64,000 nucleotides of DNA, taken from Klebsormidium nitens. Its lineage: Eukaryota > Plantae > Klebsormidiophyceae. Where the stretch lies: assembly GCA_000708835.1 (NCBI GenBank), contig DF237243.1, positions 33,691-97,690 of the forward strand, in the 5' to 3' direction. This document shows positions 38,601 through 63,740 of the stretch, in pieces. The position numbers were made by a program, and so were the translations under genes. Below the pieces are notes generated by a model. The model was not told where the DNA came from, searched no databases, and saw only the letters and a program-made list of their open reading frames with translations. Position 1 is the first letter of the stretch, and each line of letters opens with the position of its first letter.

Positions 38601-41408
38601 TGATCACAACCTAAACCGCCTTCTCATTTGATGTTACTGACCTCGTCGGGGTGGTCCAGGAAGTGGCGCCAGGTAAAAGCAATGAGCGCGTCCTCCGACC
38701 GCGGCCGCCCGTCGGGATCGTCCGCGAAAGTGCACGGCTGATTGGGGACCTGGTACAGAACCGCCGTCACGCTGTGCGTTTTGACCGCTAGCCTGCAGAG
38801 ACAAGAACACGCAGATTTCGCGACTTTTGTTCGTTTTCTTGTAGTTTATTTGTGTCGATCTTGTAATGTCGTGTTCTCCGCGCCGAGTGCACGGCTGGTT
38901 GGGCACCTGGTACAAAACCGCGTCAGGCTGTGCGTTTTGACCGCGAGCCTGCGGAAACAAGAAAAAGTTGACATTGTTGTTCGTTCGTTTCTTCGCTTAC
39001 TATCGTGTCGCCCGCAAAAGTGCGCGGCTGGTTGGGCACTTGGTACAGAACCGCCGTCACGCTGTGCGTTTTGACGGCAAGCCTGCAGACCGAAAGCATC
39101 ATTTCCTTTATTGAAGCGTCTTCGCTTTAGTCGTCTCCAATTTGTTGCTCAAGGGCTCATTCTCTCGACAACGTCGTCTTACACTGTTCTTCCGGTACAG
39201 CCGTCACGCTGTGCGTCCTGTTCGCGAGCCTTGCAGAGACAGAAGACTTTAGGAGCTGCTTTGTCGTTCGCATTTGAGCTTACTGTCGCGTCGTCAGAGG
39301 ATCGAGGGACCATCCGAAGGCCTGGCTTGACCGCCCTAGCTGATGCGCAAAGGTGGAAAGAGGGTGAAAGAGTTGATTCGCTTATCGCTCGTCTTCTAAG
39401 GCGCTCGGAAAGTGGACTTGCAAGGAGGATCTATTCTCAGCCTTACGTACGAGCTTGAGCTAGGACCCTTGAACCAGCAGAGCTGTGATTCTCATGGTCT
39501 GACCGAGACTGAAATTGTTTTGTACTCTAGGTTGCAGCGAGCGCAGATCGCGAAACTAGGCACTTACGCAGCCGCCATCAGGATGAAAGAGTCGAACGCC
39601 GTCGGTGGGGGGCTCGTATTGCTCCCCTCGCTGACCAGGAGGAGCGCCGTGCGAGTGAACTGGAGGTTGCCAGGGACGATGACCACCAGCGTATGCGTCC
39701 ATACGCTGCAGCTCGTATCCTTTTCCGTGAGGCACCTGCAAACTAACGGGGGTTGAGTTGATGCTCCTATGGCTTTGGAAAAATGTTTCGTGCTAAATTT
39801 TTGCGAGCCGGCGGCAGCGTTTGGAAGTGTTTCGTGCGCCTGCATGTACAACTGCATATTACTCTCAAGTGCAGGAATATTACAATCACCGGACGGGTAG
39901 AGTTGATTCAGGGTGTTAGGGTGGTTAGTGTGCGGAGCGGGCACAACCGGAGGTTAGACTATTTATTCTCTTGTAATCGAAGGGGCTTATTAAATCTGAA
40001 CTCGAAACACATCATCTGCAGGGCATCGAGGGTCAAGTATGTGCTCTTTGAAGCAACTTTCCTGTGCTAGCCACTGGCCTTATCTGCAGATAAGGTGACT
40101 TCTTCTTTGTCGCACACACAGACTCCCAAGGAAAGAAACAATGAGAACCGGATCTTAAGTTTGGAGGACCCTTTCTAGTTGATGTCATCACACCATAATA
40201 GCAACGAGGGGATTCGGGTCAATGGCGGCAAGCAAGCAGGACTTTTAACGAGATGTGCCGCTGCACTTAGAGACCACAAACAGGAGGCAGAGTTCCCAAA
40301 TCCACCGAACTTTGTGCTCCCTCAATGTTGGAAATTAGACAGAGCAGCAGCGCAGGGGGGGGCGAATGCGACGGCATACCGCTGGCTCGTCATATTGAGC
40401 ATGTGTCCCGTCCATGTCGAGAACGGCAGCACGCCGTGCATGACTCGGCCAGTCTCGTGCCATCTGCAATGGCAAATAATACCAACGCGCTCGACGAAAG
40501 GAAATCTGGTCTGATTGCATCATTTCGATTCGTTTCTTATGAACGTGGCCTGGGGAGATACACAGTAAGGGTGAACATCTGAAGGAGATAAGTGCACCAG
40601 TGAACAGTGAGCATCAGGAACAAATGCAAAGGCTGTTCCGCGAAACACCCTTCGCATTTGTTCCTGATGACCGCTTAGCAAAGTATTGAAGGTGAAACTG
40701 TGAATAACCGATGACGACTTTCAGAACCTTCTTCATTAGTCATTCCAGCTCCTTGCCTGCTTCAGGAAGCGAGATCAAGGTCGACGGAACACCGTTTTCT
40801 GTACCAAATGAACGTGGGCTTAAAGAGCTTAGAGCAATCCCTCAGATGGTCAATGTACTATCTGGTGAACTTTCCGGAGTCATGTCAACAGAAGGACCCA
40901 CGAAACGAAGTTAACAGTACTAGCCGAGGCTCCATCAAGTGAGCAGAACAAAGAGGTGCACAACCGGATTTACTCACAAAAGACACCGTGCCCTATTCAA
41001 TCCTGCGCGCAGCTAGAGCTAGATTGCATATCTGATATAAGGACATGCCAGGAGCATAAGATGGTCCAAGATCCTCCAAAAGCATGTGCTTCTGAGGAGA
41101 AGCGTCTTTCTATGGGTTTTCCTATTTCTCAGCCATAGACAGACCCGCTTTGATAAATGGACATTGAAAGCTTTTCACCAAAGCTCGCGTGTGCGTCGAT
41201 CTCTTGTTCCTCACCCGTAAGCCACATCCACTTTGGCGACATACTCATCGAGCGCCGTCCCGCTGACCGGAGCGCGTGCAAAGCTCGAGTTGCTCGCATC
41301 AGCACATGGGGCTTGGCAGATGATCCGAGCATAGCTAGGACAGATTGCGAAAGCTACCACTAGGAGGCTGAGCCTAGGAACTAGGTGCGACGCCATTTTT
41401 GAAAACAT
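32609..41408 (-). CDS. PhoPQ-activated pathogenicity-related protein (PqaA)/AprA-family alpha/beta-hydrolase-like protein, ~11-12 exons, with signal-peptide-like N-terminus
   Basis: Spliced exons give TALDEYVAKVDVAY/GW, GHMLNMTSQ/R, VWTHTLVVIVP, VLYQVPNQPCTF...RSEDALIAFTW, ARFPMVKAAVRAMD, FAVVGASKRGWVAWL, LGGWPFTFRDYY, MPKLLVTTSQDEFF, FWDALPGEKH...NTEH, RRDFR and VVPDTYPF. The last exon may splice further at 32635. Confidence 0.9.
35200..35785 (-). repeat. Four ~170-bp tandem copies of the acceptor plus first ~70 nt of the long PqaA exon
   Basis: On the minus strand cag|CCGC(T/G)T(C/T)TT...GGGACGC...GAGAAGCACGC...CACGGAGCA occurs at the true exon (35271) and at ~35441, ~35598 and ~35771. The most distant copy is the most diverged. 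Confidence 0.85.
35955..36137. mobile_element. ~180-bp MITE-like element with ~47-bp terminal inverted repeats, in a PqaA intron
   Basis: Left tcgattatgttcagttaggtgtatgttgagttagatcagtaccccggg versus the reverse complement of the right end, tcgaatttatgttgagttacggctatgttgagttaggtcatgcccggg. The interior is C/A-rich. Confidence 0.7.
38720..39240 (-). repeat. Four ~140-155 bp tandem copies of the acceptor plus 5' part of the PqaA exon LAVKTHSVTAVLYQVPNQPC
   Basis: The true exon begins at 38792. Copies with their own AG acceptors lie at ~38948, ~39081 and ~39228. Confidence 0.88.
40612..40669. other. 21-bp-stem inverted repeat (hairpin) in PqaA intron 1
   Basis: catcaggaacaaatgcaaagg-(16 nt)-ccttcgcatttgttcctgatg; one mismatch in 21 bp. 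Confidence 0.85.
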
Positions 41409-43334
41409 TGCGTTGCAGGTGGTCTCTATGGTTGTTTAGCTGGTTGATATGGTGGAGGATTGTGTGTACCCCGGCTTTCATCATATTTGCCTGCTACTAA
41501 CCTAGCACTAACTCAGCGCTGCTTCAGTACCTGACTGGGCCTGGTTAACAGCAGGTTTACTTGCTGCAAATATGAGGCTCGGGGGAGACCACGCATCTTT
41601 GTCCTGCCTGTAAGAAGCAAGAGAATTTGATGAGTCTAAAAGCTGTAGCTTCTTGTCAGAGGTCCAAGAGTTGTGGCCGCATTGGGTCTCTTTCAAAAAC
41701 TTTCTCAACAGGTCTTAGGAGGGTCAGTTTTCTGTGCCTTGGATGCACTTATTCCATGCAGACACTTGTTTTTGACAGCGGTCAAATTTTAAGAAGTAGC
41801 AAGGGGGGGCAAGGTCCTTCTTTGGGGCATGGTTTTGTTGGGCCTCACTGTCCTGGATTTGCTTGGAAAAGCAGTGGCAAGTAAACTGTTTTCAAGCTGC
41901 AGGTTTGTCTTTGACTTACTCTCAAGGGAAGGTAGATACCAGCTTGCCAAGCTGGAATTGACCACGCCGTAAAGAACGGTTACTGAAACAAGGTTGCTTA
42001 GCCATGCACTCAAAACCGGAAGTTGCAAACGAACATGCTCGCTGTACACGAAATGGTCCCGTGTTTCATTCATTCAGTCTCATCAAACAAGCCAGCAGCA
42101 GTCCTAGTGGGCAATGCAGTGAGTCTTGCCAGCTGCTCAAAAGAAAGACATTTGAATCGTTCTGAGAGGGCGGTCTTGAAAATGGTTTTCACTGACCTGC
42201 GCACCACTCTGCTGCGCCCTGACTTGAAAGAATTTACACGCCCAATGACCGGACCATCAGTGGGAGCTATGCTCCTGCCCCCATGCATTTGTCCCTATGC
42301 ACGTTTGTTTGAAGCTTGATTGCAAATGATGAGTAGGCGATGGTGATGAAGTATATGTCATGCTGAGCGCCTCATCTAGAGAGCTGCACCATGAAAAGCG
42401 CTACAGCTCATTGTCTTAGTCATCAGACGGCAGCGGTTACAAATGGATGTGAGCAAGTGTAGGCTGAAACAGTGGAAGTCCATGAAGGTGCCGCCATTCC
42501 TGCCAAAGACGAAGAGGCCCAAGCATTCTGGGCTGCAGAATAAGCCGGCCGCGCAGCGATAAGCGGCCATGCCTGTGCGACCATGTGCTATATGCATGAG
42601 GGTCCGGTCGCGGGGCGGCGCGAGGCTACAATCCCACCCAACTCAGGGTTTTCATCGAGACCGTCCATAGAGGTGGCAGCCTTTTGGGCACCGTCGATCC
42701 GGGATGTCTTCAGAGGGGGGACCCGGGCACGGCGAAGTGCCCGGTTTGGCTCTTGCTTCGTTCAATTTCACCGTCGATGGCCCCTATGGGGCTAATCAAC
42801 GATGCAGATGGTTTGTGCTCATTATAGCCCGTGAGTGCTCAGATGATTGGGATGAGTCGGTGAACAAAGGTGAGTCAGTCGACAACACTGAGTGCACATG
42901 CTAATAACTTGCATAGCCTAACTTTGCTTGTCAACCTGAAATAATTGCCACTAGCCTCTTTTACTGTTTCAAGCCGTGTTGTCTGTGAGCAAATGGGTTG
43001 TGGTGGGAACACTGCTCAGAGCGTCTTGAAGGGGTCACCGGGTGTCACAACAGTGTCCAGAGACATATTATTGGTATGTGGCAAGCATAGGTTGGCTGCT
43101 GAGGCTGCACGACATACAAGGCGAAGGGAGGTCAAAGGCGGATTTTGCCGAAGGAAGCAGCGTGTTGCTCGCAGCCGCAGTTAGGAAAGTACGACACACT
43201 GCAGCAGCTTCACAGCTTCAAGGATCGTCATTTGAAAGTGAGCAAAAGAGGTCTTCATTCACATCACAGTCCGACCACTGGAACCTTATTGCGAGATCTG
43301 GCTTCCTTGTAGCCTTCCACAAACACTCGCAGCT

Positions 43335-45480
43335 TGGACCGAGATTTGCCTGNNNNNNNNNNNNNNNNNNNNNNNNNNNNNNNNNNNNNNNNNNNNNNNN
43401 NNNNNNNNNNNNNNNNNNNNNNNNNNNNNNNNNNNNNNNNNNNNNNNNNNNNNNNNNNNNNNNNNNNNNNNNNNNNNNNNNNNNNNNNNNNNNNNNNNNN
43501 NNNNNNNNNNNNNNNNNNNNNNNNNNNNNNNNNNNNNNNNNNNNNNNNNNNNNNNNNNNNNNNNNNNNNNNNNNNNNNNNNNNNNNNNNNNNNNNNNNNN
43601 NNNNNNNNNNNNNNNNNNNNNNNNNNNNNNNNNNNNNNNNNNNNNNNNNNNNNNNNNNNNNNNNNNNNNNNNNNNNNNNNNNNNNNNNNNNNNNNNNNNN
43701 NNNNNNNNNNNNNNNNNNNNNNNNNNNNNNNNNNNNNNNNNNNNTAGAAGATCAATGGTGGATTCTTGGTACACGCCATCAGTTACAAGAGAAAGACAAT
43801 GGGATGGACGTTCCTGAAGAGCAGCCCATGTACCGAGATTTGCCTGTTTCTTTCTAGAAGATAAATGGTGGATTCTCGGTACACGCCATCAACTACAAAG
43901 TCTGCAGAAACTCAACAGAATGGCTTTGCCCTGTGAAAATCACGAGCATGTACCGAGATTTGCCTGTTTCTCTTTAGAGTAGTATTCGTGGAATCTTGGT
44001 ACACGCCATCAACTACAAACTCTGGAGAAACTGGAATAATCACAAGCCTGTACCAAGTTTGCTTGTTTCTCTCAGAGTAGTAATCGTGGATTCTTGGTAC
44101 ACGCCGTCATTTACAAGAGAACACACGGTGGAATGGCCGACCCTCAGCACGGTGGGGATGTACCAAGTTTTCCCCTTTCTCTTTAGAGTAGTTATTTGCA
44201 GTTCTTGGTACACGCAGTCACTGGGTACGGTTACAGGAGAAAAGTCAGTAGAATGGCCGACCCATTTACAAGAGAACACACGGTGGAATGGCCGACCCTC
44301 AGCACGGTGGGGATGTACCAAGTTTTCCTCTTTCTCTTTAGAGTAGTTATTGGCAGTTCTTGGTACACGCCGTCAGTTACAAACTCTGGAGAAGGTCAGT
44401 GGAATGGCCGACCCTGCAGCGTACCAAGATTGCCTGTTTCTNNNNNNNNNNNNNNNNNNNNNNNNNNNNNNNNNNNNNNNNNNNNNNNNNNNNNNNNNNN
44501 NNNNNNNNNNNNNNNNNNNNNNNNNNNNNNNNNNNNNNNNNNNNNNNNNNNNNNNNNNNNNNNNNNNNNNNNNNNNNNNNNNNNNNNNNNNNNNNNNNNN
44601 NNNNNNNNNNNNNNNNNNNNNNNNNNNNNNNNNNNNNNNNNNNNNNNNNNNNNNNNNNNNNNNNNNNNNNNNNNNNNNNNNNNNNNNNNNNNNNNNNNNN
44701 NNNNNNNNNNNNNNNNNNNNNNNNNNNNNNNNNNNNNNNNNNNNNNNNNNNNNNNNNNNNNNNNNNNNNNNNNNNNNNNNNNNNNNNNNNNNNNNNNNNN
44801 NNNNNNNNNNNNNNNNNNNNNNNNNNNNNNNNNNNNNNNNNNNNNNNNNNNNNNNNNNNNNNNNNNNNNNNNNNNNNNNNNNNNNNNNNNNNNNNNNNNN
44901 NNNNNNNNNNNNNNNNNNNNNNNNNNNNNNNNNNNNNNNNNNNNNNNNNNNNNNNNNNNNNNNNNNNNNNNNNNNNNNNNNNNNNNNNNNNNNNNNNNNN
45001 NNNNNNNNNNNNNNNNNNNNNNNNNNNNNNNNNNNNNNNNNGTTATTTGCAGTTGTTGGTACACGCCGTCAGTTGAACGAGAAAGTCAGTAAAATGGCCG
45101 ACCCTGCAGCGTACCAAGATTGTCTCTCTCTCTTTAGAGTAGTTATTGGCAGTTCTTGGTACACGCCGTCAGTTACAAGTTCTGGAGAAAGTCAATGGAA
45201 TGGCTTTGCGCTGTAAAAATCACAAGCATGTACCAAGATTGCCTGTTTCTCTTTAGAGTAGTTATTTGCAGTTGTTGGTACACGCCGTCAGTTGAACGAG
45301 AAAGTCAGTGGAATGGCCGACCCTGCAGCGTACCAAGATTGTCTCTCTCTCTTTAGAGTAATTATTGGCAATTCTCGGTACACGCCGTCAGTTACAAGAG
45401 AGAGCCAATAGAATGGCCGCCCTGCAAGGACGTACCAAGATTGCCTCTGTCTTCATAGATCAGTTATTGGCACTTCTTAA
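43335..45480 (+). repeat. Tandem array of ~100-120 bp units, each with a ~52-53-bp imperfect palindrome (GTACCAAG...CTTGGTAC); interrupted by two assembly gaps
   Basis: At least 12 complete or partial units visible. Cores start at e.g. 43830, 43950, 44050, 44160, 44315, 44421, 45111, 45231, 45330 and 45442. Consensus gtacc(a/g)agattgcctgtttctctttagagtagttattggcagttct(t/c)ggtac-acgccgtcagttacaa plus a 30-50 nt variable but mutually related linker. Confidence 0.92.
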
Positions 45481-45676
45481 GATATACGCCATTGCCATTG
45501 GCCTATGTCTCAAGATCCACTCGACGCTCTTTCATACTGGGCACGTGCGTCTCTTCATACAAGTGCAGAGTCAACCGTCATTCCGTCAGATGTTGGTAAG
45601 AGGTCAGCCAACTATGCTTGGTATACTTAGAGGAATGCGTTTTGTCATATTGATAACTTTGTTACCTTCGTGCAGG

Positions 45677-48600
45677 ATGGCATCGACCGTGCTTGTCGTC
45701 GGCGCACCTCTGCTCCTCACCTCGACCGCTCCGGAGTCCAACGCCGGCTTGCACTCCACGCTGGCTGCTGGCGAGCAAGTTCGGGCCTTTGCCGCCATCA
45801 CGATCGGCGGGTCCGACGGCTGCTCTTCTCAACCCGATCACAAAGTCACGTTCTCGGACCTGAGGACCGTTCCGGCTGCAGTCACACCGTTGCCAAACGC
45901 CGGAGGAGTACGAGGAGGGCATCCGTCCTACACCGCACGACGAGCGCACGGTGACTTCCTCTTCGACTACGGGTTCGCCTTCTGCCTCCATCAATCGCAG
46001 GCGTTCACGAAGCGCGGTTTTGGATCCACTTGCATCGGAAGCACGTGCATGGGGAAGGTGCCCCTCTACTCCCGCAGTTTGGATCCTTTCCTCTGGGATC
46101 GGAAAAGGAACCGTGGCGGTGCGATCATCTGCCCTGGTGGAGGAGGTCACCTTCTCTGCCTCCGCTGTCTTGACGCGCTTTACGCTGGGGGTCGGCCGTT
46201 CGTTTCAACCGCCACGGGGGAGGTCGTTGACCTTGGTGACCTCTTCAGGAAGTACGAGGCCTTCCCCGCCTCGGGGGAGCTGAAGGAGGCACAGCTGGGG
46301 CAATCTGCGGCGGAGGGGGGACACCAGTTCTTCGTACAAAGACGGGATCTGGTCGCATGCCCGTTCTGCAAGGAAAGTCGACAACGAAACCGGGGCCGCC
46401 CTGAAAGGAAGAGGCTCGAATCCGGGCCGACTCCGAAGGAACTCGGCTCAGCCGCGATCTTTGCGGAGTTGAAGCGAAGCGCGGTTCCTCCAACGATCAT
46501 CGCACCCGGCCTCTTTCTCCTGCCGCAACTGGACGTCAACTGCCGGCTCATCGACATCTCGTTGAGGGACGGAAGGCCCGTCAACGTCCCCAGGCTCGTC
46601 CAGGTGGACCACTTGGGTGACTACACCTGCATGTGCGGCCAGAGGGCGTGCAGAGAGCACGACATCCGTTTTCTCAGAGAAATCGCTTTTCTCGACGGAT
46701 GGTGGCAGTCGGTTTCGAAGGAGGTCGAGCCCCTCTTCGGCTCGTTCAACGGCAAAAGAGGTTCGCACGGGAGGTGACGGGTACCGGACTCGGACGAGTG
46801 CTCCCACTTGATCGGGACGGTCAGCTTGGAGTGCCTCTGACTGGCCTCAATGCGGAGGCCTGGCTGGGGCCGCAGCTGCGCGTCTTTGTGACCTCTGAGG
46901 GAGCCGATGACTCTCCGGCGGTCTGCGTGCTCGGTGGAATGAGCGCCTTCTGCAGCAGATGCTCGGAACGGGAGCGGTGTCCGCACGTACAGAGGGTGCT
47001 TACAGCAACGGGGGTGGGAGATGGGGTTCAGAGCGGGCCTGCTCACAAGGCTACCGAGAGGGCAGCAACAAACTCGGACAAGCGTGCGGAGAGGTCAGCG
47101 CTTCGAGCGTCGGGACAGAGGAACATCTGGGTCTGCAACGACCCCATGTGTCGAAGGCCCGACTCAAAGGCTGCGTGCGTGCATGGAGGCACGCTCGAGG
47201 AGTGGGAGTGCCTCCCTGCAGCAGCCTTGGACATGGGGCACAGCCACAAGAAGATCGACACAGTCATGAGCAGGGGTGGGCAGCAGGTCACGAGCCTCTG
47301 CGAACGATGGGGTGATGAGGGGATCCGGAGGCGGGATGGGGCAAAGTACTTCTGCGCGCCGAGGCCCGTTGAACCGCTCTCACCTTGCGGGCGGCTATGG
47401 CAACTGGAGAGCAGGAGAGGATCGCTCTATACGGCTGGGGCGCGGTATCCGGTGATGACGTACCGGCGGGTGTGTACAACCGCACCAGGACGAGAGGCGG
47501 CGTGCTGCTCGGTGGCTTACGACGGTCAGGTAAGATCTAGTTCTCACCACCTGGACCAATTACCGATTGCTCCGTGTTTATTGCACTTTGTGCACGCCGT
47601 TGCTTTTTCCTTTTAGCCTTAGCACCTTGGAATGCTTTGAAGCACTCTGGCCCGCCGTGTGTCCGAATGGCAAGCTTATGCACGTCGGATTTCAGATAAT
47701 ACCGGGTCTTTAGCCTCTTTTCTGGATGCGGCACCCATTGCAAGTTGGACAAGTCTTGTACGTGATACAACTTGCGCGCCTCAAGAGTGGTCAAGCAGCC
47801 AAGTAGCGACTCGTACCCTGTATGAATGCAATAATCGCAGACTACAAGCTCCTCGTGGGGAGGCAACGGCCACACCAAATCAGTAAGACGGCCGCACTTG
47901 GAGCAAGCTTGCCACGGCCGGATCTCCATCAGCGGTTTAGGACCAGGTGTTCGATTGAAAGGCACCGGGAATTCGTGCATCACACCTCCAATATACGCTT
48001 GGGCGTCTTTGCAGGTTGATGCGGAAGCTGCCAAGTCTCGAAGAGAAAGGGCACCCTTTTGACCGATGACGCTCAATGCTGAGGCGAACTTCTCATTTGC
48101 AGCCATGGTTGTCCCTTTAAGACGCCAATCAAAACTACTGGTTGGTTTCAAACGTAGGATTCGAATGATTGAATGTATCTCTCTATTTCCTTGCAGGAGG
48201 ACGCCATCTTCAACTTCTCCGGGACGACGCTCATCTCGCACGGCCTCCTGCTGCGCAACCACTTTGCGGCAGCCTTGGGTGCTTCCCATTCGCTCAACTT
48301 TGACGCCAACGACATGGCGACCAGAAGCCTTGAAGGCCCGAGCGCATCCAGGCTGGACGACCGCGTCTTTGACGCAGCGATGCAGGCCTTCAACGATCTC
48401 GCAGCCCGGCCTCGGATCCAGCACGTCTGCAAACGTCCTGATTGCGCTCATCTGTACACGTCTGAAGTTCGAGCTGCTGAGGCAGACGCAGCGAGAGCTG
48501 GGTACCCACTCCAACCGGAGCGGACCGAGGGGTCGCCCCTGAACCTTTCAACCTACGCCTTCAGCCGGGATAAGGTCATCACGTTCGACGGCACATTTTT

Positions 48601-50473
48601 CCCCAACTCCAGTGCTATGCGGGATAGCAGCGAGGCCTCTCTGTATAGCATATGTGAGCCGGACCCGGGCGCACCTCGCGTGGCAGGGGGTTTCACCCCT
48701 CTGAGCGTCGGTGGGGTGCGGCCCTCGGACGTTCCTCTCGAGGGGATCGACTGCCCTTGGAAGTTTAGGAACGGGCTGTCGGAGCTGAGGCCGGCCGTAC
48801 GAGCAGCGGCCTTCCGATGGTGTAACTTTCGGAAGGGCCAGGGTCAGGGGGCCAACTTGCCTCTTTCGGCGGAGGAGTTCGTTGCCATGCGTCAGGGGTT
48901 GCCGGCAAACGTGAGGGCCCTGATCGACCTTGCGACAGAATCCGGGGCCTGTGCTGATCCCAAGAACTGCGCCATCTGCAAGGCGGTCCCGCGCCGGCCT
49001 TGGATGGACGAGGTGTTGAAGAAGGGTCCTGTAGCGCCCACCGGTTGGTGCCCGACCCATTTCCAGCCATATGCGGCCCTCCTGCACGCCCTCCTGATAC
49101 CCCGCTACAGCTGGGTTTTTGGCCACATCGTGACACTGAAGCTCCTTCGACGTCTGTTGCTGGAGGGGCCTCTGGACGACCTGGAGCTCGCTTACCTCGC
49201 CCAGGATGGGCCAATGCTAGCCAACATTCTCCGACTGCACGTGCAAACGGTTTCTCCAAGGCAATACGCGTTTCCAACGGCACTGCGTCCGCTCATTCGG
49301 GACATCTACGCCACCAACCTCCTCTGTTCAACGAACCGAGTGCCAACCGCCCTGGCAGCGCCTCAACTTGCTCCCCTCTCGCTGCCCTCCTCGATGCTAC
49401 GGAGCATCTGTGGGCCTTGGAGTGTGAGAGACGTCGGTCTCTGGGCAACTCAGGAGATCCTGGCATGGTCTATACGGAACAGCGTGGAATTGCGCTCAAG
49501 GGGGCCGCCAACGCTCTCCTCTTCGAGATTGAGGTTCGAGAGCCGCAATGCTACGGTTCTGATGGCTTTCTACGGGAGGCCTCGGCTGTCTACAAGGAGC
49601 GCGTGGGGGCCGTGTCAATCTACGACTTCCATCCGCTGCTCTATGGCCGGCCGCAAAAGTTCACGGATTGGGAGGACGCATCCGGTCGGGGGAAGAAGGG
49701 CTCGGAGGAGCGGCTTGCGCAGCACTGTGGGGCCCCGAATCCTCGCTCGTCGAAAGGCCGAGCGGGGATGTTCATTGCATGCTGCCAGGATCGCGCGCCC
49801 CTCGGCTACCATTGGCTTAAGGGTGGCGAGAGCGTGTCCGATAAGTTGGGAACGGTCCTGATCACACGCTTCCCCTTCAAGACGCTGCGCGGCCTGACGA
49901 TAGTGGAAGACGCTGCCTGTAATGCCCAAGAGTGGCTTCTCAACCGGTGAGTGATACAAGTTGCTTAACTTGTGCATCTCCATTAACTTGAGATGCATTA
50001 ATGTTGTGGGTCTTCAAGCTTCTATTGAGCTTTGGTGACCGAAACGCCCTATGCATGCAAGTTTTCCGTTCATGGCCTTTACTAACAATCTTTACAACTC
50101 TCTTTTGTGCAGGGTGCCACAGCTGGCAAAATATATGCTCTTCCTCGTCGACCGCTTTCACTCTGGCCCAATCAGCTGCGCGCCCGCTGGAGCGGCCAAG
50201 CGTTATGCGACGCACACTTGCTCGCCGACTTTGTTCATCGACTCCTACTCGCAGCACGATCATACCGTGACAACAGCCAGTGAAGGGATCAATTCGGGCT
50301 TAAAGCGATCGGCGGCTAGTCTCCAGCAGATCACAAGCATTAGACGCTTGATGAGTAGGATCACAACGATTCTTGACACTCTGTTTGAGAGATCGAAGTA
50401 TGCACTGTATTATCAGTCTCAAAGCGATGTTAGGAGCAGTCCGCTACGGGAGATTATCAGGGCGTCTCGTTAA
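45677..50473 (+). CDS. KDZ (Kyakuja-Dileera-Zisupton)-type transposase with N-terminal RING-like, SWIM-like and CxC-type Zn domains; 2 introns and 2 apparent -1 frameshifts
   Basis: Exons 45677-47529, 48197-49946 and 50113-50473 (GT-AG, in phase). Motifs: ICPGGGGHLLCLRC...CPFC; YTCMCGQRACREH; FCSRCSERERCPH; RRVC...YDGQ/EDAIFNFSGTTLISHGLL (CxC-like); ITFDGT; GMFIACC; GGES...LITRF; IVEDAAC...LN/R; FLVDRFH...HTCS; ASEGINSGLK, matching the KDZ catalytic-region pattern. Frame changes near 46750 and 49320. Confidence 0.8.
47537..48106 (-). CDS. XPA/Rad14-like C4 Zn-finger plus XPA-C domain protein (189 aa) with possible F-box-like N-terminal segment, nested antisense in KDZ intron 1
   Basis: ATG 48106 to TAG 47537, wholly inside intron 47530-48196. 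CSKC-x18-CDYC is followed by LTTLEARKLYHVQDL...YYLKSDVHKLAIRTHGG...AKAKRKKQRR, paralleling XPA CEEC-x17-CDNC...LITKTEAKQEYLLKDCDL...LYLKLQI...WGS. LSLRDLAASASTCK recalls an F-box helix. Confidence 0.7.
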   Translation of the reverse strand: MAANEKFASALSVIGQKGALSLRDLAASASTCKDAQAYIGGVMHEFPVPFNRTPGPKPLMEIRPWQACSKCGRLTDLVWPLPPHEELVVCDYCIHTGYESLLGCLTTLEARKLYHVQDLSNLQWVPHPEKRLKTRYYLKSDVHKLAIRTHGGPECFKAFQGAKAKRKKQRRAQSAINTEQSVIGPGGEN

Positions 50474-50762: not shown

Positions 50763-53744
50763 TCATTGTTCGGACTCCTCCTCCTTGCACGCACGCACGT
50801 GACTTTGTGAGCAGTTCGTGCACAACGGTAAACCCTCAGGAGAAAGTCTGACGGTCGATGGGCCTGCTGTGGGGTCCTTTTTGGCCATGTAATGGTCCTT
50901 GCCGTCAGTATCTTCCTTATAGCCCGAGTATCGACACCATCGTCCGACCCACTCAATGGTAGACGACCACAACTTCTCGGAATGCAGAGCTTTGCATATG
51001 ATTCCTTCCGGGGGGAACCACCATCCCTTGTGTGTTGGGATTTTCTGGATGCTTCTTGCTTGAGGTTGCATATCAAATTTGCCGTTGAGGTTACTAATTA
51101 GGACATTGACGTCCATATGTCGGTCCTCTTTGATGTCGAGTGCCGAGAGAAACGTATCGTATGTCGCTTTAATATCCACCGAAGCTACCCAAGTTTCTAC
51201 AGAAGGGTGAAAGCAACCGTTCTCAAGCAGCGCCTGCATCATCTTGACGTGTGGAGGTATGGAGTGATCCTTTAAACTCTCGCCCCATGCGGTGACTGGG
51301 ATCGTCTGCGGATTCCAATCAGAGATGTCGATCGAAGAGAGGTACTTATAGAAGCTCAAAGCCGTTTGCGGATCTTGGAGCTCTTTTATGAGACCGTCGA
51401 AGTACTCCTTGTTGCCAACCATGGCGCCAGAGCATTCCTGGCAGGAATACCGCCGATCCCCCGCCTCTCGTTTGACCGGCCATGTATTATTTGTTGTGAA
51501 AATAATGTTGCTCACGTCCTTGGTCTTTATGGCATCAAAACCCTTCTTTTCTACGCAGGTCTCCGACTCTGTTATCAGTGACTTCATCCGATCGTTGAGC
51601 TTGTAGGCTCCTCCCCAGTTTCCAGCCTCGTCAAAGACGATCAACAACCGATTGGCAGATAATGCATTGAATTGACCGATCACCTTTTCGATCTCATTGC
51701 AATATAGATAGTTTTTGCTTCCAATGATCATCATCCCCAAGAAGTCGGCCAACATGGATTTGCCGCACCCTTGCGGGCCTCGAAGAACCCAGGCAACTCC
51801 GATCTTCTTTCTTGGTCTTTGAACGGCGTGGGCCATCCACTTGACGTTGTATGCGAATCTTGTTTCGCACCCGTCGCTGAGGATGGCCCTGATGTGCCAC
51901 ATGAGCTTGGGCATTTGCAACTCACAGTCGGCCATCTCGGAAGGTTCTAGCTTTTGCAGAAGAGGCTTGAACTCCAGTCCGCAGAATAGGTTGAAGTGAC
52001 GCGAAGTAACCTTGCTTAGGTCAGGCTCGAAGACAATCCGGTCGTACTCCTGTCGCTTCGAGTTGCTTTCCCAGAACTTTGCAGCTTCCTTGTTCTTGCC
52101 GGGCAGACAATCCAACTGAATGTTCCTGCACCGTTCAATAAAGTTGTGGCCTGGCCTTTCTATCACCTCTTCTCGTTGGAGGTTGCCGTCTTTGTCACGG
52201 CAGAAGACGAGCTCGGTATAAACCGTCTTGTTTCCTCCAATCACAACCGCAAAATAGGCGTTCATCACCTTGATAAGAAGATTGTACATGTCGTTCCTGC
52301 GCTTCTTCCTTTCAGCCGCTTCCTCTTTACTAAGCTTCTTCGTTTCATCGCTTCTTGGAACCAAATAGCGCTCACATTCTCGGATCATGGACGCCTCTGC
52401 TCTCAGCGGCAAGCACTCCGGCCAATAATAGATCCCAAGCAAGCACGCTAGACGTTTGATGCACTCTGAACTTAGACAACGGTAAAGTAGAATGGCACCA
52501 TTGCACAGGATGCTGAAGTTGTTTGAGACGTGTTCGCACCCGTTCAAGCACGTTCGCGTGCCAATCGTTTTAAACTTAAGGACTTGCCAGCCTGTCTGAG
52601 TCCTCATCCCAACACCATTGAAACGACTTTGGTCCTCTGGCAACACGTTTTGCAGCATCTCTCTAATTGCAGTGAGAGCGGGCTGCAACCCAGGCAAAAT
52701 GGAATCCATATTCAAGTCCGAGCCCCCTGTTGATTCTTCAGCTTGTGTGTACTGATTGTTGGGCGAGCTGATGCGCCTGTTCGAGTTGCTGAGGCTTTTG
52801 TTGACCTCCACATTTCCCGTTGTACTACCGACTGCCTTTGTTGACGTGTCGTTCAGGAATCGAACCAACCACGGCGGCATAGCGACTCGTGGTGTGGTTT
52901 CATCACCTTCTATCCAGGAATAGCCAAAGGCTCTGCCCTTGTTATCTTGGTAACTCGAGGGGCTTACAAAAGCTATTCCGTTGCTTCCACGACCATCAAT
53001 CGCCCATGTAGTACCTTCGTGAAGGATTGTCGAGAAGTTTAATGGATTGAGAAGCCCTTCGGTCTTGCTTGCAGAGAAAAAGTAGTGTAAACCGTTTCCT
53101 GAACCTGTTCTTGCCTTTAATGTGATGATGTCACCGTGTTTCTTTATCAATTCCTCCCACAGTTCTGTTCCAGCCTCCTTCCCTGCGTTCGTGTCTGTGG
53201 CCTCCTTCCTTTCTGCGTCTACATCAAGCAGAAATATGTCCGAAATCCCACACAGGACCGCCAAAGCGTTCACGTTCGATGGCGCTCGGCAAACATAGGC
53301 ATCGATCCTCTGTTTGTATGCCTCGGTGGACGTCCATAATGGTTTGTACCCTCCTTTACTGAAGATGGGCTTCTTTTTCCCATCCGAGTCCATTTCGAGC
53401 CTTAACGGGATGGCATACATGCCTTGCTTGTAGAGCGATCGGATCGACTTTACCAAAGGGTACTTGTGTCTGTTGATCGATCTCCTAGGGGTGTTGATGG
53501 TGGTATCGTCTGGTTCGAAAAGTGCCCCACTCTGATCGACAACCAGCAGCCGAATGTCGGCATTTGGCGGCATGTCAGTTGATAAATCGGGGTTCTTCGT
53601 TGGAGCATTCATACTCGGCACCTGCTGTGGCTTCGGCACTTCATTCGGTGGTGCTGTGGCCAAAGCAGCATCTAGGGTCTGATGAGGCCTTGAGCCACTT
53701 GCTAGCACACCGGTTTGGAAGGTGCTGATCATGGCGGGCTCCAT
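50763..53744 (-). CDS. Intronless primase-helicase: N-terminal bifunctional Prim-Pol, central Zn finger, C-terminal D5-like SF3 helicase (993 aa)
   Basis: Prim-Pol motifs FLLDVD, RTGSGNGLHYFF, IDGRG...FVSPSSY, PWL. Zn motif CLNGCEHVSNN...YRCLSSEC. SF3 Walker A GPQGCGKS, Walker B IVFDE, motif C IIFTTNN, and GDRRY. Confidence 0.92.
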   Translation of the reverse strand: MEPAMISTFQTGVLASGSRPHQTLDAALATAPPNEVPKPQQVPSMNAPTKNPDLSTDMPPNADIRLLVVDQSGALFEPDDTTINTPRRSINRHKYPLVKSIRSLYKQGMYAIPLRLEMDSDGKKKPIFSKGGYKPLWTSTEAYKQRIDAYVCRAPSNVNALAVLCGISDIFLLDVDAERKEATDTNAGKEAGTELWEELIKKHGDIITLKARTGSGNGLHYFFSASKTEGLLNPLNFSTILHEGTTWAIDGRGSNGIAFVSPSSYQDNKGRAFGYSWIEGDETTPRVAMPPWLVRFLNDTSTKAVGSTTGNVEVNKSLSNSNRRISSPNNQYTQAEESTGGSDLNMDSILPGLQPALTAIREMLQNVLPEDQSRFNGVGMRTQTGWQVLKFKTIGTRTCLNGCEHVSNNFSILCNGAILLYRCLSSECIKRLACLLGIYYWPECLPLRAEASMIRECERYLVPRSDETKKLSKEEAAERKKRRNDMYNLLIKVMNAYFAVVIGGNKTVYTELVFCRDKDGNLQREEVIERPGHNFIERCRNIQLDCLPGKNKEAAKFWESNSKRQEYDRIVFEPDLSKVTSRHFNLFCGLEFKPLLQKLEPSEMADCELQMPKLMWHIRAILSDGCETRFAYNVKWMAHAVQRPRKKIGVAWVLRGPQGCGKSMLADFLGMMIIGSKNYLYCNEIEKVIGQFNALSANRLLIVFDEAGNWGGAYKLNDRMKSLITESETCVEKKGFDAIKTKDVSNIIFTTNNTWPVKREAGDRRYSCQECSGAMVGNKEYFDGLIKELQDPQTALSFYKYLSSIDISDWNPQTIPVTAWGESLKDHSIPPHVKMMQALLENGCFHPSVETWVASVDIKATYDTFLSALDIKEDRHMDVNVLISNLNGKFDMQPQARSIQKIPTHKGWWFPPEGIICKALHSEKLWSSTIEWVGRWCRYSGYKEDTDGKDHYMAKKDPTAGPSTVRLSPEGLPLCTNCSQSHVRACKEEESEQ

Positions 53745-54006: not shown

Positions 54007-54874
54007 NNNNNNNNNNNNNNNNNNNNNNNNNNNNNNNNNNNNNNNNNNNNNNNNNNNNNNNNNNNNNNNNNNNNNNNNNNNNNNNNNNNNNNNNNNNNNN
54101 NNNNNNNNNNNNNNNNNNNNNNNNNNNNNNNNNNNNNNNNNNNNNNNNNNNNNNNNNNNNNNNNNNNNNNNNNNNNNNNNNNNNNNNNNNNNNNNNNNNN
54201 NNNNNNNNNNNNNNNNNNNNNNNNNNNNNNNNNNNNNNNNNNNNNNNNNNNNNNNNNNNNNNNNNNNNNNNNNNNNNNNNNNNNNNNNNNNNNNNNNNNN
54301 NNNNNNNNNNNNNNNNNNNNNNNNNNNNNNNNNNNNNNNNNNNNNNNNNNNNNNNNNNNNNNNNNNNNNNNNNNNNNNNNNNNNNNNNNNNNNNNNNNNN
54401 NNNNNNNNNNNNNNNNNNNNNNNNNNNNNNNNNNNNNNNNNNNNNNNNNNNNNNNNNNNNNNNNNNNNNNNNNNNNNNNNNNNNNNNNNNNNNNNNNNNN
54501 NNNNNNNNNNNNNNNNNNNNNNNNNNNNNNNNNNNNNNNNNNNNNNNNNNNNNNNNNNNNNNNNNNNNNNNNNNNNNNNNNNNNNNNNNNNNNNNNNNNN
54601 NNNNNNNNNNNNNNNNNNNNNNNNNNNNNNNNNNNNNNNNNNNNNNNNNNNNNNNNNNNNNNNNNNNNNNNNNNNNNNNNNNNNNNNNNNNNNNNNNNNN
54701 NNNNNNNNNNNNNNNNNNNNNNNNNNNNNNNNNNNNNNNNNNNNNNNNNNNNNNNNNNNNNNNNNNNNNNNNNNNNNNNNNNNNNNNNNNNNNNNNNNNN
54801 NNNNNNNNNNNNNNNNNNNNNNNNNNNNNNNNNNNNNNNNNNNNNNNNNNNNNNNNNNNNNNNNNNNNNNNNNN

Positions 54875-55982
54875 GCTTACGTTCGTAGCTTCTCATAGCC
54901 GTGGGCCAATCGTGAAGCATCCGTTTGGCTACAGCCTCCCGTTGAACAATCGAGTGGTCCCCCTTAAAGGCGTCAGATATGTAGACATGTCTGAGATGGT
55001 TCATTGTAAGGTACCGTCCTTTGCTGAATTCGATGCCGGCGACGAATCGACTGAGGTAATTGTCGGACATTGGCGTCGTGACATCATTGAGCCGTGTCAA
55101 GAAGTATGCCCTTGGAATGAGGACCAAAGACCGTTTGATATATTGCGATAACCGTTTGCTCAATTCGAAATCCTGGCGTCCATACCGAGATGCGGTTTTG
55201 AAGGTCGTAAGTGTTAAGACGAAAGAGTCTTTGGAGCACTCCTTCAGCGCGTTGCCAGATTGCTCGTGCACACCCTGCGCTTCGGCGCTATGAAAGGAAC
55301 CGTCTGGCTTTTGTAGAGGGAGATTGCTGAAATCCCGACGTTTTGGCGGCTCGAGGGTATTCGCGGCTAGCACGAGATGCTGAAAGACCGTTTTGATGTC
55401 GTCTCGTTCTAGTGGTCTTCCAAGTTGGTAAGTGTGGACGATCTGCCGTCTGATCTTTCGCCCGAGCTCTTCCATTTTTGCCTTGATTTCTGCCATACTG
55501 ATCCAGTTTTCTTGCTCCCTTTGAGTGGGCGTTTGACATAAGGTTTGATTGCTCTGCTTGTTTTTCGCCAAAAGGAACGCGGCAAAGAACTGGTCGTACG
55601 CTTCGCCCCATTTTCGTGACTTTGAGATGGCCATCAGGGGTGTAAGCTTGTTGCAGAGGCTTCCTGGAGACCATGCCGCCTTTGCGGCGTTGCTTTGGCG
55701 TTCTCTTATGGCGTTCACGATGGTGCCGGCGTCTCTGATCCAATCTATGTCTGTCGGCAGCTCCGCCGTTTCATTATTGGTGATTAAGCCGTATATGATC
55801 CTTAGGCTATTGATGTACTGGGAGCAAGTTGATTCGGCACGATGTGAGCCGTCCTGTAAAACACTGAGATGAACCTGCTCACCACACATAGGGACTGCTC
55901 TCAGCTCGTTTGCTTGGTTGTCCCTGGGTGCTTCTTCGGTGCTTTGCTGAGTTGCCATTGCTGTTGTTGTGATCGTATGCAA
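54875..55982 (-). CDS. Tyrosine recombinase/integrase, intronless; last codons run into gap
   Basis: Catalytic pattern R (PPKRRDF), K (TFKTASRYG), HxxR-like (MNHLRHVYIS), H (KRMLH) and Y (MRSY) in the expected order. QENWISM also recalls integrases of Polinton-like viruses and NCLDVs. Confidence 0.85.
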
Positions 55983-55984
55983 GA

Positions 55985-56228
55985 TTATAATTCTACAATT
56001 ATCAAACGTGCCTCAATCAAAAATTCCGAATTATCTCTTTCGGAAAGGTTATATGTGGGTTATATGTCACAAGTCACAGGTTATACTCGATATTCCAGAA
56101 TTGTGATTCACGGGGGTCGTATTTTTGAGATGGTGCTCCGAAGTGAAAAATAACAAACGGAATAAACGATATAGGGATCAACATCTACTCTGAGAATTTC
56201 TAGAAATTATCCAAAGACGCCAGAATTA
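55985..56228. promoter_or_regulatory. AT-rich divergent intergenic region, probable bidirectional promoter
   Basis: Visibly AT-rich spacer between the head-to-head recombinase ORF and ORF 56229. No specific motif established. Confidence 0.35.
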
Positions 56229-56933: not shown

Positions 56934-56982
56934 AACGCTCTTCAGACCTTGCATCAGTACAACCTCAGATCAGCGATCTGAT

Positions 56983-57609: not shown

Positions 57610-57814
57610 TGGGCTAGATATCTATGTGCATAGATAGGCTCAGATCCTTACCACTGCTTGGATTTAAGGGGCAACTTAGCTCTCACATACAAATACAATG
57701 GCTACATCTAGCATCTTGACAAACAAAGCGAATAAATTACAAGCTCGAGGATGACCACGTGATCAACGTTGACCCTAAGCTAACGCAGCACTAACAAGAT
57801 ATATACACCTTGAG

Positions 57815-63620: not shown

Positions 63621-63740
63621 CTGGAAAAGAGGATCACACAGGAATCAGATCGAATGCCCTCTGCAGGTACCTACTACTACGTGCCTCTGTATCCAAGGTC
63701 CGGCAGAAAGGGTTCGGTGGCATACAACAAAGCGGTATGT

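Follow-up and report, generated by a model that had tools for sequence, protein, structure and literature searches.

Covarying palindrome arrays in an integrated element of Klebsormidium nitens: candidate hr- or ori-like repeats for its UL9-like helicase

Two arrays of tandem imperfect palindromes lie in a multicopy element within the 64,000-nucleotide stretch of Klebsormidium nitens DNA analyzed here (hereafter, the window). In copies of this element the arrays have a common anatomy, keep their place and orientation, and have covarying arms, and the type of arm is associated with the type of UL9-like helicase module. In our judgement, there is about an even chance that the arrays are the element's own cis-acting repeats, of an hr- or ori-like kind, and predicted dimer-binding sites for the UL9-like helicase.

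Array anatomy in the window

Array 1 (43335-45480, forward strand) is built of tandem imperfect palindromes of 51-53 bp, each with a conserved linker motif on its 3' side. It holds at least 12 tandem units with a period of 100-155 bp, or about 20 if the lengths of the N runs are correct. The dyad span was 51-53 bp in all ten window units that could be fully read, and the arms, of 8-10 bp, are 81-87% paired. The pattern GTACCRAG-N(30-45)-CTYGGTAC matched nine times in the window and never in 100 dinucleotide-preserving shuffles, and its matches are confined to 43830-45381 and 63741-63910. The palindromic tandem array of nearly fixed span described in the first-pass annotation is therefore real. 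Array 2 (63740-64000, forward strand) has the same palindrome and orientation as array 1 and a period of approximately 117 bp. Its start lies some 100 bp 5' of the gene for primase-helicase 2, described below, and it is cut by the end of the window.

Other details of the first-pass annotation needed adjustment. The loop had been called AT-rich; the dyad centre is moderately so (AT fraction 0.56-0.62 vs 0.48 for the whole window), but this enrichment is mild and is missing in some relatives (0.46-0.50). The linkers had been said to drift, whereas about 15 bases 3' of the right arm are conserved as strongly as the arms themselves and are also found in relatives (real copies of the linker motifs in the window lie at 43775-43789 and 44130-44142). 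Moreover, a G variant had been taken as compensatory. It occurs in both arms of one unit (43830), but in a single arm at 43950 and 45330, so that the case for compensation within the window is weak, even though covariation among the relatives is strong. The array had also been placed beside an origin-binding helicase gene, which is correct for array 2, located directly next to the UL9-like gene at its 5' side, but not for array 1, whose neighbour is a 650-aa gene (p650), the UL9-like gene being 12 kb distant.

Array 1 contains two gaps in the assembly (43353-43744 and 44442-45041). Each of them starts a few bases past a left arm and stops a few bases short of a right arm, indicating that both lie inside the array, at a dyad centre. 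If the half units at a gap are joined directly, only about 8-10 bases are missing there; otherwise, the missing sequence amounts to these 8-10 bases plus whole units. As the array 1 region is non-coding, reading frame is no issue at the gaps. The gaps reflect assembler failure and make unit counts unreliable, which would suit a host satellite or an assembly product with no link to the element. Such an origin is extremely improbable, since the palindrome repeat is absent from the window's 42 kb of host DNA, and the same architecture is found at the same places of the element in independent assemblies (K. nitens GCA_000708835.1, two JGI metagenomes and one ENA assembly). A dispersed host satellite, which the first-pass annotation had named as an outcome that would count against its own reading, does not fit these observations.

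Searches by pattern in viral and metagenome collections yielded nothing further on the repeat. The bare dyad pattern returned 82 contigs in IMG/VR, each with a single match and none with an array, approximately the level expected by chance, and the loci obtained in this way (L011-L090) were left out of later analysis. The pattern of arm plus linker gave five single matches among JGI metagenome contigs, all lacking element genes and similarity to the window, and neither the scan of IMG/VR nor that of JGI metagenome contigs detected the exact window-type unit beyond the window itself. In addition, no Rfam family matches the arrays, the only match being a sub-threshold one to mir-335 located in host DNA, and a tRNA scan found none.

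The element, its genes and the places of its arrays

The element is longer than 21 kb and occurs in multiple copies in Klebsormidium-like algae. Its left end lies at approximately 42612 in the window, with host genes to the left; everything left of this position is host DNA. The left terminal segment (42612-42850) is defined by a sharp onset of similarity between copies (blastn and flank alignment, nine copies), and each locus has a single such segment, which invariably flanks the left array on its outer side. Beyond the segment, the DNA differs by copy, with kinesin in locus L008, RPN7/zf-Di19 in L099, and PhoPQ_related/DAGK/Yippee in the window, which indicates that the element was inserted at different host sites.

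Several conserved genes follow array 1. The p650 gene (45671-47616, forward strand), encoding approximately 650 aa in relatives, is conserved at 48-83% in all relatives by tblastn; in the window it occupies two frames, equivalent to one frame change, and it has no Pfam or PDB match, including by profile against PDB. On the opposite strand, a conserved ORF of about 330 aa (47540-48547, reverse strand; 42-62% to relatives by tblastn, no Pfam match) overlaps the start of the following gene, and its coding status is uncertain. That gene, p562 (48173-49950, forward strand), is conserved and multicopy in K. nitens, with zero to one frame change relative to its relatives. No relative of p562 was found in IMG/VR, and a profile gave no match to PDB sequences. 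The AlphaFold model of this family is mainly helical and of low confidence (pLDDT 33.5); a role as capsid protein was considered for p562 and rejected for want of support, the poor model being helical. A small conserved ORF of approximately 144 aa (50039-50470, forward strand) has 70-90% identity to all relatives and no Pfam match. Further on, three small conserved ORFs were detected by tblastn (54875-57621), downstream of a third assembly gap (54007-54874) across which locus L001 is colinear, with approximately 405 bp there. In Klebsormidium genomes, the element is currently split into gene models annotated as 'hypothetical protein'.

Two genes encode putative primase-helicases. Primase-helicase 1 (50763-53744, reverse strand) is an intact ORF of 993 aa combining PrimPol (AEP) with a D5-like SF3 helicase (DUF5906), as judged by Pfam (PF09250, 1.6e-10; PF19263, 5.5e-19) and by a match to a primase in PDB (6k9e, 2.4e-16). 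Primase-helicase 2 (57818-63670, reverse strand) consists of an AEP-like N-terminal part (61892-63670), a UL9-like SF2 helicase (60012-61569) and a C-terminal DUF8368 (57818-59110). It is spread over five open stretches in three frames, and was treated as one gene, the interruptions being introns or breaks. It is colinear with 91% of a relative consisting of a single ORF (P0057), and its stretches are also colinear with P0072, which carries PriCT-2 and PF02399 (E-values of 6e-9, 0.011 and 2e-24). Moreover, K. nitens gene models join its parts, and the same domain order is seen in distant relatives.

The identification of a UL9-family helicase gene in the first-pass annotation was borne out, as one open stretch matches PF02399 at 3.8e-7 and relatives do so at 1e-19 to 1e-32; the AEP-like N-terminal part, which had been guessed, was found as well, through colinearity with P0072. 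Matches to PF02399 span only the helicase part of that profile. When the profile of the helicase family was compared with PDB, it matched only chains named 'Replication origin-binding protein' (9hgj, 9hgi, 9zgf and 9vjh; E 3e-10). For DUF8368, no likeness to the C-terminal domain of UL9 or to any DNA-binding domain was detected in PDB by sequence or by profile, and its AlphaFold model was too poor for a fold search (pLDDT 35.5). This family is tiny, with 49 proteins among 1.84 billion representatives.

Arrays occupy up to three conserved positions per element, and both place and orientation are conserved. The left array lies 0.3-1.3 kb inside the conserved terminus in all eight copies that reach the left end, at 0.7 kb in the window. 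The other two positions lie within the element: the first separates the primase-side ORFs from the 3' end of the UL9 gene, and the second is 5' of that gene and is followed by additional element genes in L002 and L006. The relative orientation of the arrays is direct or inverted depending on position, and not simply inverted at the two ends.

The placement of the left array beside a sharp terminus suggests an alternative in which the arrays are end-processing sites, either subterminal repeats of the CACTA or Mutator kind, to which a transposase or recombinase would bind, or terminal tandem repeats of a linear virus-like genome, comparable to the inverted terminal repeats of poxviruses or ASFV. 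They would then serve excision, integration, end replication or packaging, and not the firing of internal origins. The different host insertion sites and the multiple copies in K. nitens agree with this, and fusions of AEP with UL9-related SF2 helicases are known from nucleocytoviruses with such ends (10.1101/2024.02.29.582850). However, arrays also occupy two places well inside the element, the DNA fetched for the various loci yielded no terminal segment in inverted copy, and no transposase, integrase or recombinase domain was detected by Pfam in the ORFs scanned from the window and its relatives. Furthermore, arm type follows the helicase module and not the termini: the window terminus groups with that of L002, while the window arms do not. 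Altogether, we regard end processing as unlikely. The first-pass annotation had itself named subterminal transposase sites as an option; array 1 agrees with this in its subterminal place, but the remaining arrays lie inside the element, and the ORFs scanned gave no transposase. The YR and KDZ proteins that it had listed were not detected in the window either (Pfam, about 50 ORFs of window and relatives), and Pfam revealed no capsid, packaging ATPase or polymerase domains in the window's 21 kb of the element or in relatives.

Arm types, covariation and the UL9-like module

Arrays of dyad units, with a period of 96-129 bp, were found in all nine close relatives whose sequence covers the right places. 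A distant carrier of the AEP-UL9 gene, L101, has no arrays within 10 kb on either side of it. Three arm types could be distinguished, namely A (GTACC..GGTAC), B (TTTGCAC..GTGCAAA) and C (GTCAAAA..TTTTGAC), and the span is fixed for each type (51-56 bp in A, 44-48 bp in B and 54-59 bp in C). Each element carries one arm type, common to all its arrays. In addition, types A, B and C share linker motifs, whose offsets are constant.

The arm covariation anticipated by the first-pass annotation was retained in a larger set of units. Over 97 units, 83% of the arm positions pair with their own partner, compared with 35% when paired with arms of another type; these counts were end-anchored, a MAFFT alignment having lost the arm register across types. 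Within type A, 89% of positions are paired vs 78% in shuffles, a value reached by none of 500 shuffles, and the covariation score is 0.269 vs 0.095 (0/500), with slid controls at 21-56%. Such covariation speaks for arm complementarity only, as a dyad or as a hairpin, and not for which molecule reads the arms. The arrays could accordingly be structural or silencing repeats, that is, clusters of transcribed small-RNA hairpins, or cruciform or heterochromatin repeats with no sequence-specific partner, and single strands do fold better than shuffles (z -2.0 to -6.7). Against this, mismatches of the G:T kind are not favoured over A:C (38 vs 39 over the arm positions of the 97 units), giving no sign of a one-strand RNA hairpin, and arm position 8 is mismatched in most lineages. 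Moreover, stems are short (7-11 bp) and centres long, the arrays match no Rfam family, and the span fixed per type together with the conserved flanking motifs suggests proteins on duplex DNA. We thus consider a structural or silencing role very unlikely.

Arm type tracks the UL9-like gene module, whereas it is independent of the core genes nearby; core types and UL9 types were seen in all four possible combinations. The only relatives of the window's UL9 module that have arrays are type-A loci (L004, L008 and L010; 40-69%); this module was also matched in L098 (57-78%), where no array was captured. Locus L002, homologous to the window on both sides of array 1, has the core genes nearest to those of the window (78-91%), yet carries another UL9 module and type-B arms, and L001 joins an L002-type UL9 module to type-B arms. 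Likewise, the core genes of L010 are 88% like those of L006, a type-C locus, yet L010 has the window-type UL9 module and type-A arms. Cognate binding sites would be expected to change together with the UL9-like module in this way, although the association represents only about two to three independent exchange events. We also considered whether arm type might follow the N-terminal domain of PrimPol, and rejected it, as L003 (60%) has type-B arms and L010 (33%) type-A arms; this domain is mosaic too, with 29% vs 91% identity within one gene between the window and L002.

The match between arms and module could also arise without function, if the adjacent array travels along with the gene and gene conversion then evens out the other arrays. 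This possibility is at the core of a further alternative, in which the arrays are sites for another protein of the element, or act mainly in enhancement or partition, in the manner of baculovirus hr with IE-1 or of EBV FR with EBNA1, and the UL9 match reflects only linkage and concerted evolution. Array 2 directly adjoins the UL9-like gene at its 5' side, and arrays flank the UL9 module and could move along with it as a cassette. In addition, the linker motifs are constant over all arm types, which indicates a conserved second reader for part of the unit, unchanged with the UL9 module. Nevertheless, array 1 of the window is a type-A island between L002-like flanks, so that linkage alone is insufficient, and conversion in the right direction would be needed in every combination seen; moreover, no IE-1-like or EBNA1-like domain was found by Pfam in the ORFs scanned. 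We therefore consider this alternative quite unlikely, and favour the arrays being sites of the UL9-like helicase.

Proposed mechanism and comparison with known systems

From the observations above, we infer binding, dimerisation and melting at the arrays, and origin activity. Each unit would provide two inverted half-sites at a fixed span (51-53 bp in the window), with a conserved and moderately AT-rich centre between them. The AEP-like/UL9-like SF2 helicase would bind as a dimer and recognise the half-sites by its C-terminal domain, which is variable and in this lineage is DUF8368; it would then melt the centre and start priming there with its own primase part, and the PrimPol-D5 protein would be the second replication enzyme. 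In agreement with this proposal, UL9 of HSV forms a dimer and recognises the origin box with its C-terminal subdomain (PMC13483431). Occupancy would be raised by the many tandem units and by their presence at as many as three places in an element. Points that weigh against the proposal are the absence of arrays near the gene in L101, the failure to detect any likeness of DUF8368 to DNA-binding domains, the mild AT-richness of the centre, and the linker motifs common to all arm types. Moreover, the arrays may double as enhancers, as the abutment of one array on the 5' end of the helicase gene suggests, and they may also be recombination points for the exchange of modules.

Taken further, these elements may be a still-evolving family of chromosomal virus-derived replicons of streptophyte algae with exchangeable cassettes of initiator and sites. 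The variable C-terminal domain and the arms would then form a matched code, swapped between element lineages by recombination at the arrays, after which the other arrays are converted to the incoming code. We put this forward tentatively, as possible rather than probable. If true, these elements would represent a succession of natural changes in the specificity of an origin-binding helicase from eukaryotes. Similarly, if the match between arms and helicase is one of recognition, at least three natural pairs of site and protein are available, and the DNA-reading part of the protein could be deduced by comparison alone. For annotators of Klebsormidium genomes, the element can be recognised clearly by its conserved left end together with its pair of primase-helicase genes and its arrays, of which there are up to three. 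We found no account of this element family in the literature, and no description there of palindrome arrays or origin dyads for an integrated green-algal element or for the giant-virus helicases that combine AEP and UL9-like parts.

Palindrome arrays acting as origins and enhancers are known in baculoviruses, and single origin dyads in herpesviruses. Baculovirus hr regions occur as several arrays per genome, with tandem units each containing an imperfect palindrome; the arrays of one genome are alike but differ from those of other genomes, and they are likely points of recombination. The analogy with hr regions drawn in the first-pass annotation fits, the window having two arrays and its relatives as many as three, all of tandem imperfect palindromes, with one arm type per element and different types between elements. 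The system described here differs in its host, a streptophyte alga, in the chromosomal integration of the element, and in its candidate partner, a UL9-like helicase; no IE-1-like protein was found in the ORFs scanned with Pfam, which for the window cover the portion of the element it contains. Its units are also of another build, with 100-126 bp, a dyad of 44-59 bp and two conserved linker motifs.

With herpesvirus oriS and oriL, the arrays share inverted half-sites around an AT-richer centre and the presence of a UL9-family helicase in the same genome, but they comprise a dozen or more units instead of single dyads. The protein differs as well: its C-terminal DUF8368 has no detectable likeness to the corresponding domain of herpesvirus UL9, and mammalian herpesvirus UL9 is without the AEP-like N-terminal part present here (10.1101/2024.02.29.582850). 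In having one array 0.3-1.3 kb inside a conserved end, the element resembles CACTA and Mutator transposons, poxviruses and ASFV. It differs in its internal arrays, in an array orientation that depends on position and in the absence of a detected transposase in the ORFs scanned; unlike CACTA and Mutator elements, it also showed no inverted terminal segment in the DNA fetched.

The combination of AEP with a UL9-related SF2 helicase has been described for mimivirus R8, ASFV pF1055L, ostreid herpesvirus 1 and mriyaviruses (10.1101/2024.02.29.582850). Primase-helicase 2 resembles the R8 and F1055L proteins of nucleocytoviruses in having a primase-like N-terminal part followed by a UL9-related SF2 helicase, a relationship drawn from that paper together with the Pfam and PDB matches. 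Unlike these viruses, the element is multicopy and chromosomal, and its 21 kb in the window gave no gene for a capsid, a polymerase or packaging. Nevertheless, the likeness extends to its second replication gene, since a D5-type AEP-SF3 primase-helicase is also present here, as in those viruses.

Palindromic arrays and the element that carries them

The first-pass annotation had described the stretch 43335-45480 as a tandem array of palindromes, and this was borne out: the pattern GTACCRAG-N(30-45)-CTYGGTAC has 9 matches in the window against 0 in 100 dinucleotide-preserving shuffles, and all of them fall either in this array or at 63741-63910, within a second one. The second array begins at 63740, approximately 100 bp upstream of a large minus-strand gene (57818-63670), and continues past the window end; no unit is present in the 42 kb of host DNA. 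The ten fully read units have a dyad span of 51-53 bp and a spacing of 100-155 bp, and their centre is conserved and itself partly palindromic. The AT-rich loop proposed earlier holds in a weaker form, as the AT fraction of the centre (0.56-0.62 vs 0.48 in the window) makes it only moderately AT-rich. The linkers do not simply drift: a stretch of about 15 bases on the 3' side of the right arm is conserved as strongly as the arms, and two linker variants alternate along the units in a higher-order repeat with dimeric or trimeric periods of ~220-360 bp (window 43830-45431; 18619-19507 in L002 and 18552-19509 in L006, two related metagenomic copies).

Two assembly gaps, 43353-43744 and 44442-45041, lie inside the first array at a dyad centre, each opening a few bases past a left arm and closing a few bases before a right arm, which suggests that the assembler or the reads break down at the palindrome centre. 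As this DNA is non-coding, reading frame is irrelevant here. Approximately 8-10 bases would be missing if a gap simply joins two half units, and ~3 and ~5 further units would be hidden if the N lengths are correct. Since the gaps cut the array at dyad centres, the unit count, at least 12 and perhaps ~20, is a lower bound.

Similarity among nine copies of the surrounding DNA starts abruptly at window position 42612 (equivalent to L008 5633, L099 6427, L100 4371, L002 20481, L004 20798, L006 20388 and L003 10204), and the DNA outside differs among copies, with kinesin in L008 and RPN7 and zf-Di19 in L099. Based on this comparison, a mobile, multicopy element begins on its left side at 42612, and more than 21 kb of it is seen up to the window end. 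To the left of 42612, from 1 to ~40 kb, are host-like, intron-split genes (diacylglycerol-kinase domain, Yippee, PhoPQ_related). The host part also holds a 156-bp tandem repeat (13466-13879, 2.7 copies, 77% matches), unrelated to the element units, and a sub-threshold Rfam match to mir-335 at 40591-40680 (-) (32.8 bits vs a gathering score of 64, E 7e-4) that is most likely due to chance.

The first array is followed by p650 (~650 aa, one frame change), an antisense ORF, p562 (0-1 frame change), an ORF of 144 aa, an intact PrimPol and D5-like SF3 helicase gene of 993 aa (Pfam 1.6e-10 and 5.5e-19; best PDB match a primase-helicase, 2.4e-16), a third assembly gap (54007-54874, 868 N), three small ORFs and the large gene. 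The N length of this gap is probably overestimated, since L001, a 90%-identical relative, is colinear across it with only ~405 bp. In L001 16694-21609, similarity to the window ends at window 46772 and is followed by a T7/mitochondrial-type RNA polymerase gene and an RPC5 gene; that copy is either truncated or rearranged beside host-like genes. The window appears to come from a Klebsormidium-like streptophyte alga; the element proteins have hardly any matches outside Klebsormidium nitens gene models and a small number of metagenome or run assemblies. Capsid, polymerase, packaging and integration genes were not seen in the 21 kb available, and the element may be either an endogenous virus in decay or a mobile replicon that has no capsid. 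Neither the YR nor the KDZ protein of the first-pass annotation was found, with no such Pfam match in ~40 window ORFs of at least 125 aa; their genes may be located beyond the window.

Close copies were obtained from an ENA assembly (L001), two JGI metagenomes (L002-L007, L010, L100) and the K. nitens assembly GCA_000708835.1 (L008, L009, L098, L099), and arrays of dyad units (period 96-129 bp) are present in every one that extends far enough to cover the positions concerned. There are up to three per element, conserved in place and relative orientation. The left array is subterminal, 0.7 kb inside the left end in the window and 0.3-1.3 kb inside in other copies. The middle one, absent from the window, has the primase-side ORFs on one side and the 3' end of the UL9-like gene on the other, and runs opposite to the left array (L002, L006, L008, L009); the right one, which shares the orientation of the left array, lies 5' of that gene (window, L004, L006). 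The subterminal position would suit end-processing or terminal repeats; however, internal arrays exist, the right array among them, as L002 and L006 continue beyond it with a 383-aa ORF and a HIRAN-domain protein, and no recombinase was found, so we consider this explanation unlikely.

Arm types and covariation

The arms are of three types: GTACC..GGTAC (type A; window, L004, L008, L010, L099; span 51-56 bp), TTTGCAC..GTGCAAA (type B; L002, L003 and also L001; 44-48 bp) and GTCAAAA..TTTTGAC (type C; L006, L007, L009, L100; 54-59 bp). A linker motif (real copy at window 43775-43789) recurs, allowing up to 3 mismatches, at a set distance past the 3' side of the dyad (window and L008, 3 nt; L002, 14 nt; L009 and L100, 9-17 nt), and is also found in the internal array of L001; chance would give ~0.5 such matches per locus. 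A second motif (44130-44142) behaves similarly. Since these motifs recur at fixed offsets across loci, the arrays of the three types are homologous, their arms having been replaced and part of the linker kept.

Within the window, the G variant previously taken as compensatory is indeed present in both arms of unit 43830, but in a single arm only of units 43950 and 45330, so that the in-window argument is weak. Covariation does persist in a larger alignment of 97 real units from 10 loci, in which the ten outer arm positions form 83% Watson-Crick pairs with their own partner, against 35% when a left arm is matched to a right arm from a different type (at most 38% over 500 draws). A further pair count was confined to type A, as positions are homologous within it: 89% of cells are paired vs 78% in shuffles, 42 cells changed on both sides vs 12.7 expected, and the covariation score is 0.269 vs 0.095, none of these being reached in 500 shuffles; slid controls gave 21-56%. 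Position 8 from the outside is mismatched in most units of 8 of the 10 loci, in all three types, with the exception of the window (G-C in 9 of 10 units), a possible conserved asymmetry between half-sites.

Single-stranded DNA units fold better than shuffles (z -2.0 to -6.7), as might be expected of hairpin-RNA or structural repeats. G:T and A:C mismatches are equally common across units (38 vs 39), a parity that speaks against selection acting on an RNA hairpin of one strand, and we regard such repeats as a very unlikely explanation. Dyad-pattern scans of IMG/VR and JGI metagenome contigs returned single chance matches only, one in each of 87 contigs (L011-L097, of which L093-L097 were checked for element genes and had none), which neither supports nor counters a dispersed satellite; that the arrays are a satellite or an artefact is hardly credible.

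The UL9-like module and its association with arm type

The earlier label of the large gene as "AEP-UL9" is right in substance, in view of its domain and structure-database matches, its colinear relatives and known fusions of this kind. Pfam Herpes_ori_bp matches one of its open stretches at 3.8e-7 (above the curated cut-off) and a second one weakly, and a profile of five family members retrieved only four PDB sequences, all "Replication origin-binding protein" (E 3e-10). The open stretches are colinear with P0072, a PriCT-2-bearing relative (E 6e-9, 0.011 and 2e-24), and with 91% of P0057, a relative with a single ORF of 1054 aa, in five pieces and three frames, a count in which the interruptions may be introns or breaks. 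Proteins that fuse an AEP primase to a UL9-related SF2 helicase have been described: mimivirus R8, ASFV pF1055L and those of ostreid herpesvirus 1 and mriyaviruses (10.1101/2024.02.29.582850). In Klebsormidium nitens, Herpes_ori_bp and DUF8368 are parts of the same predicted product, 841-1606 aa long depending on the gene model. Searched against 1.84 billion representatives, a DUF8368 profile found just 49 proteins; in all eight long ones scanned, the DUF8368-like part is preceded by a UL9-like helicase domain (1e-19 to 1e-32), and two of these also have a PriCT-2 primase domain. DUF8368 sits where UL9 has its C-terminal domain, the part through which the HSV-1 protein dimerises and recognises the origin box (PMC13483431); PDB sequence searches found no homology between the two domains. 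In L004, an array (723-1040) separates the counterparts of open stretches one and two of the large gene, which adjoin each other in the window; either it lies in an intron, or stretch one is a gene of its own.

Among array-bearing loci, relatives of the window module occur with type A arms only (L004 54-67%, L010 54-69% and L008 40% identical); L098, where no array was captured, also holds one (57-78%). The Herpes_ori_bp ORFs of L001, L002, L006 and L009 are undetectable or ~35% identical when compared with that of the window. Those of L001 and L002 are 95% identical, and that of L006 is ~50% identical to both; L009 shares just a 21-aa fragment at the locus end, its neighbouring module ORFs being 85-91% identical to those of L006. 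The core genes are distributed differently: the window is 78-93% identical to L001/L002 in p650, the D5 part and the small ORFs, and only 29-34% identical to the other loci in ORF 54875-55958, an ORF in which L010 and L006 share 88% identity. Core type and UL9-module type thus occur in all four combinations, and the arms accompany the module in each. Moreover, the first array is a type-A island with L002-like DNA on both sides (82% at 45706-47532, 78% at 42612-42835), and L002 has type-B arms at that place. The island and the module association are the strongest evidence that arms and UL9-like protein belong together, with the caveat that independent exchanges are few (~2-3).

An array adjoining the UL9-like gene could also travel with it, gene conversion then homogenising the other arrays, and similarity between the window and L001/L002 breaks at ~57.1 kb, near the place of the middle array, which fits recombination at arrays equally well. 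A rival reading, in which the arrays are sites for another protein and match the module through linkage and homogenisation, is in our view quite unlikely. Separately, the PrimPol-D5 gene is a mosaic (window 50763-53744 vs L002 10064-12940: N-terminal AEP part 29%, D5 helicase part 91% identical), which points to an exchange of domains that does not go along with arm type.

The association of arrays with the AEP-UL9 gene holds for the close copies that reach far enough but not for L101, a distant relative from a Logan run assembly (SRR29757542, 23 kb). On this gene-dense, virus-like contig, possibly from a free virus related to the algal element, the AEP/UL9/DUF8368 gene is a single ORF of 1054 aa, accompanied by genes for a D5-like helicase, a zf-MYND protein and a methyltransferase. 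Neither tandem nor recurrent dyad arrays occur in the 10 kb to either side of the AEP/UL9/DUF8368 gene. The arrays characterise Klebsormidium-type elements, not every carrier of the gene.

A possible role in replication and comparison with known systems

Beyond the observed anatomy, conservation, covariation and module association, we infer binding, dimerisation and origin firing, and regard it as the most likely reading, at about even odds, that the arrays are hr/origin-like cis elements whose dyads are bound by a dimer of the UL9-like helicase. Each dyad would bind the dimer via the variable C-terminal domain, the DNA would open at the dyad centre, and the protein's own primase part, together with the PrimPol-D5 enzyme, would complete the remaining steps. 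In addition, the arrays would serve as places of recombination and perhaps enhance the neighbouring gene.

In the literature searched, neither the element family nor its arrays were described. By analogy, the arrays are proposed to work like baculovirus hr regions, although no IE-1-like protein was found here and they are not a member of that family. Nor do they belong to the herpes-type origins: each unit looks like such an origin dyad, but the units form arrays rather than single dyads, and the C-terminal domain, DUF8368, shows no detectable sequence likeness to its UL9 counterpart. The helicase is of the UL9-related type found fused to an AEP primase in nucleocytoviruses.
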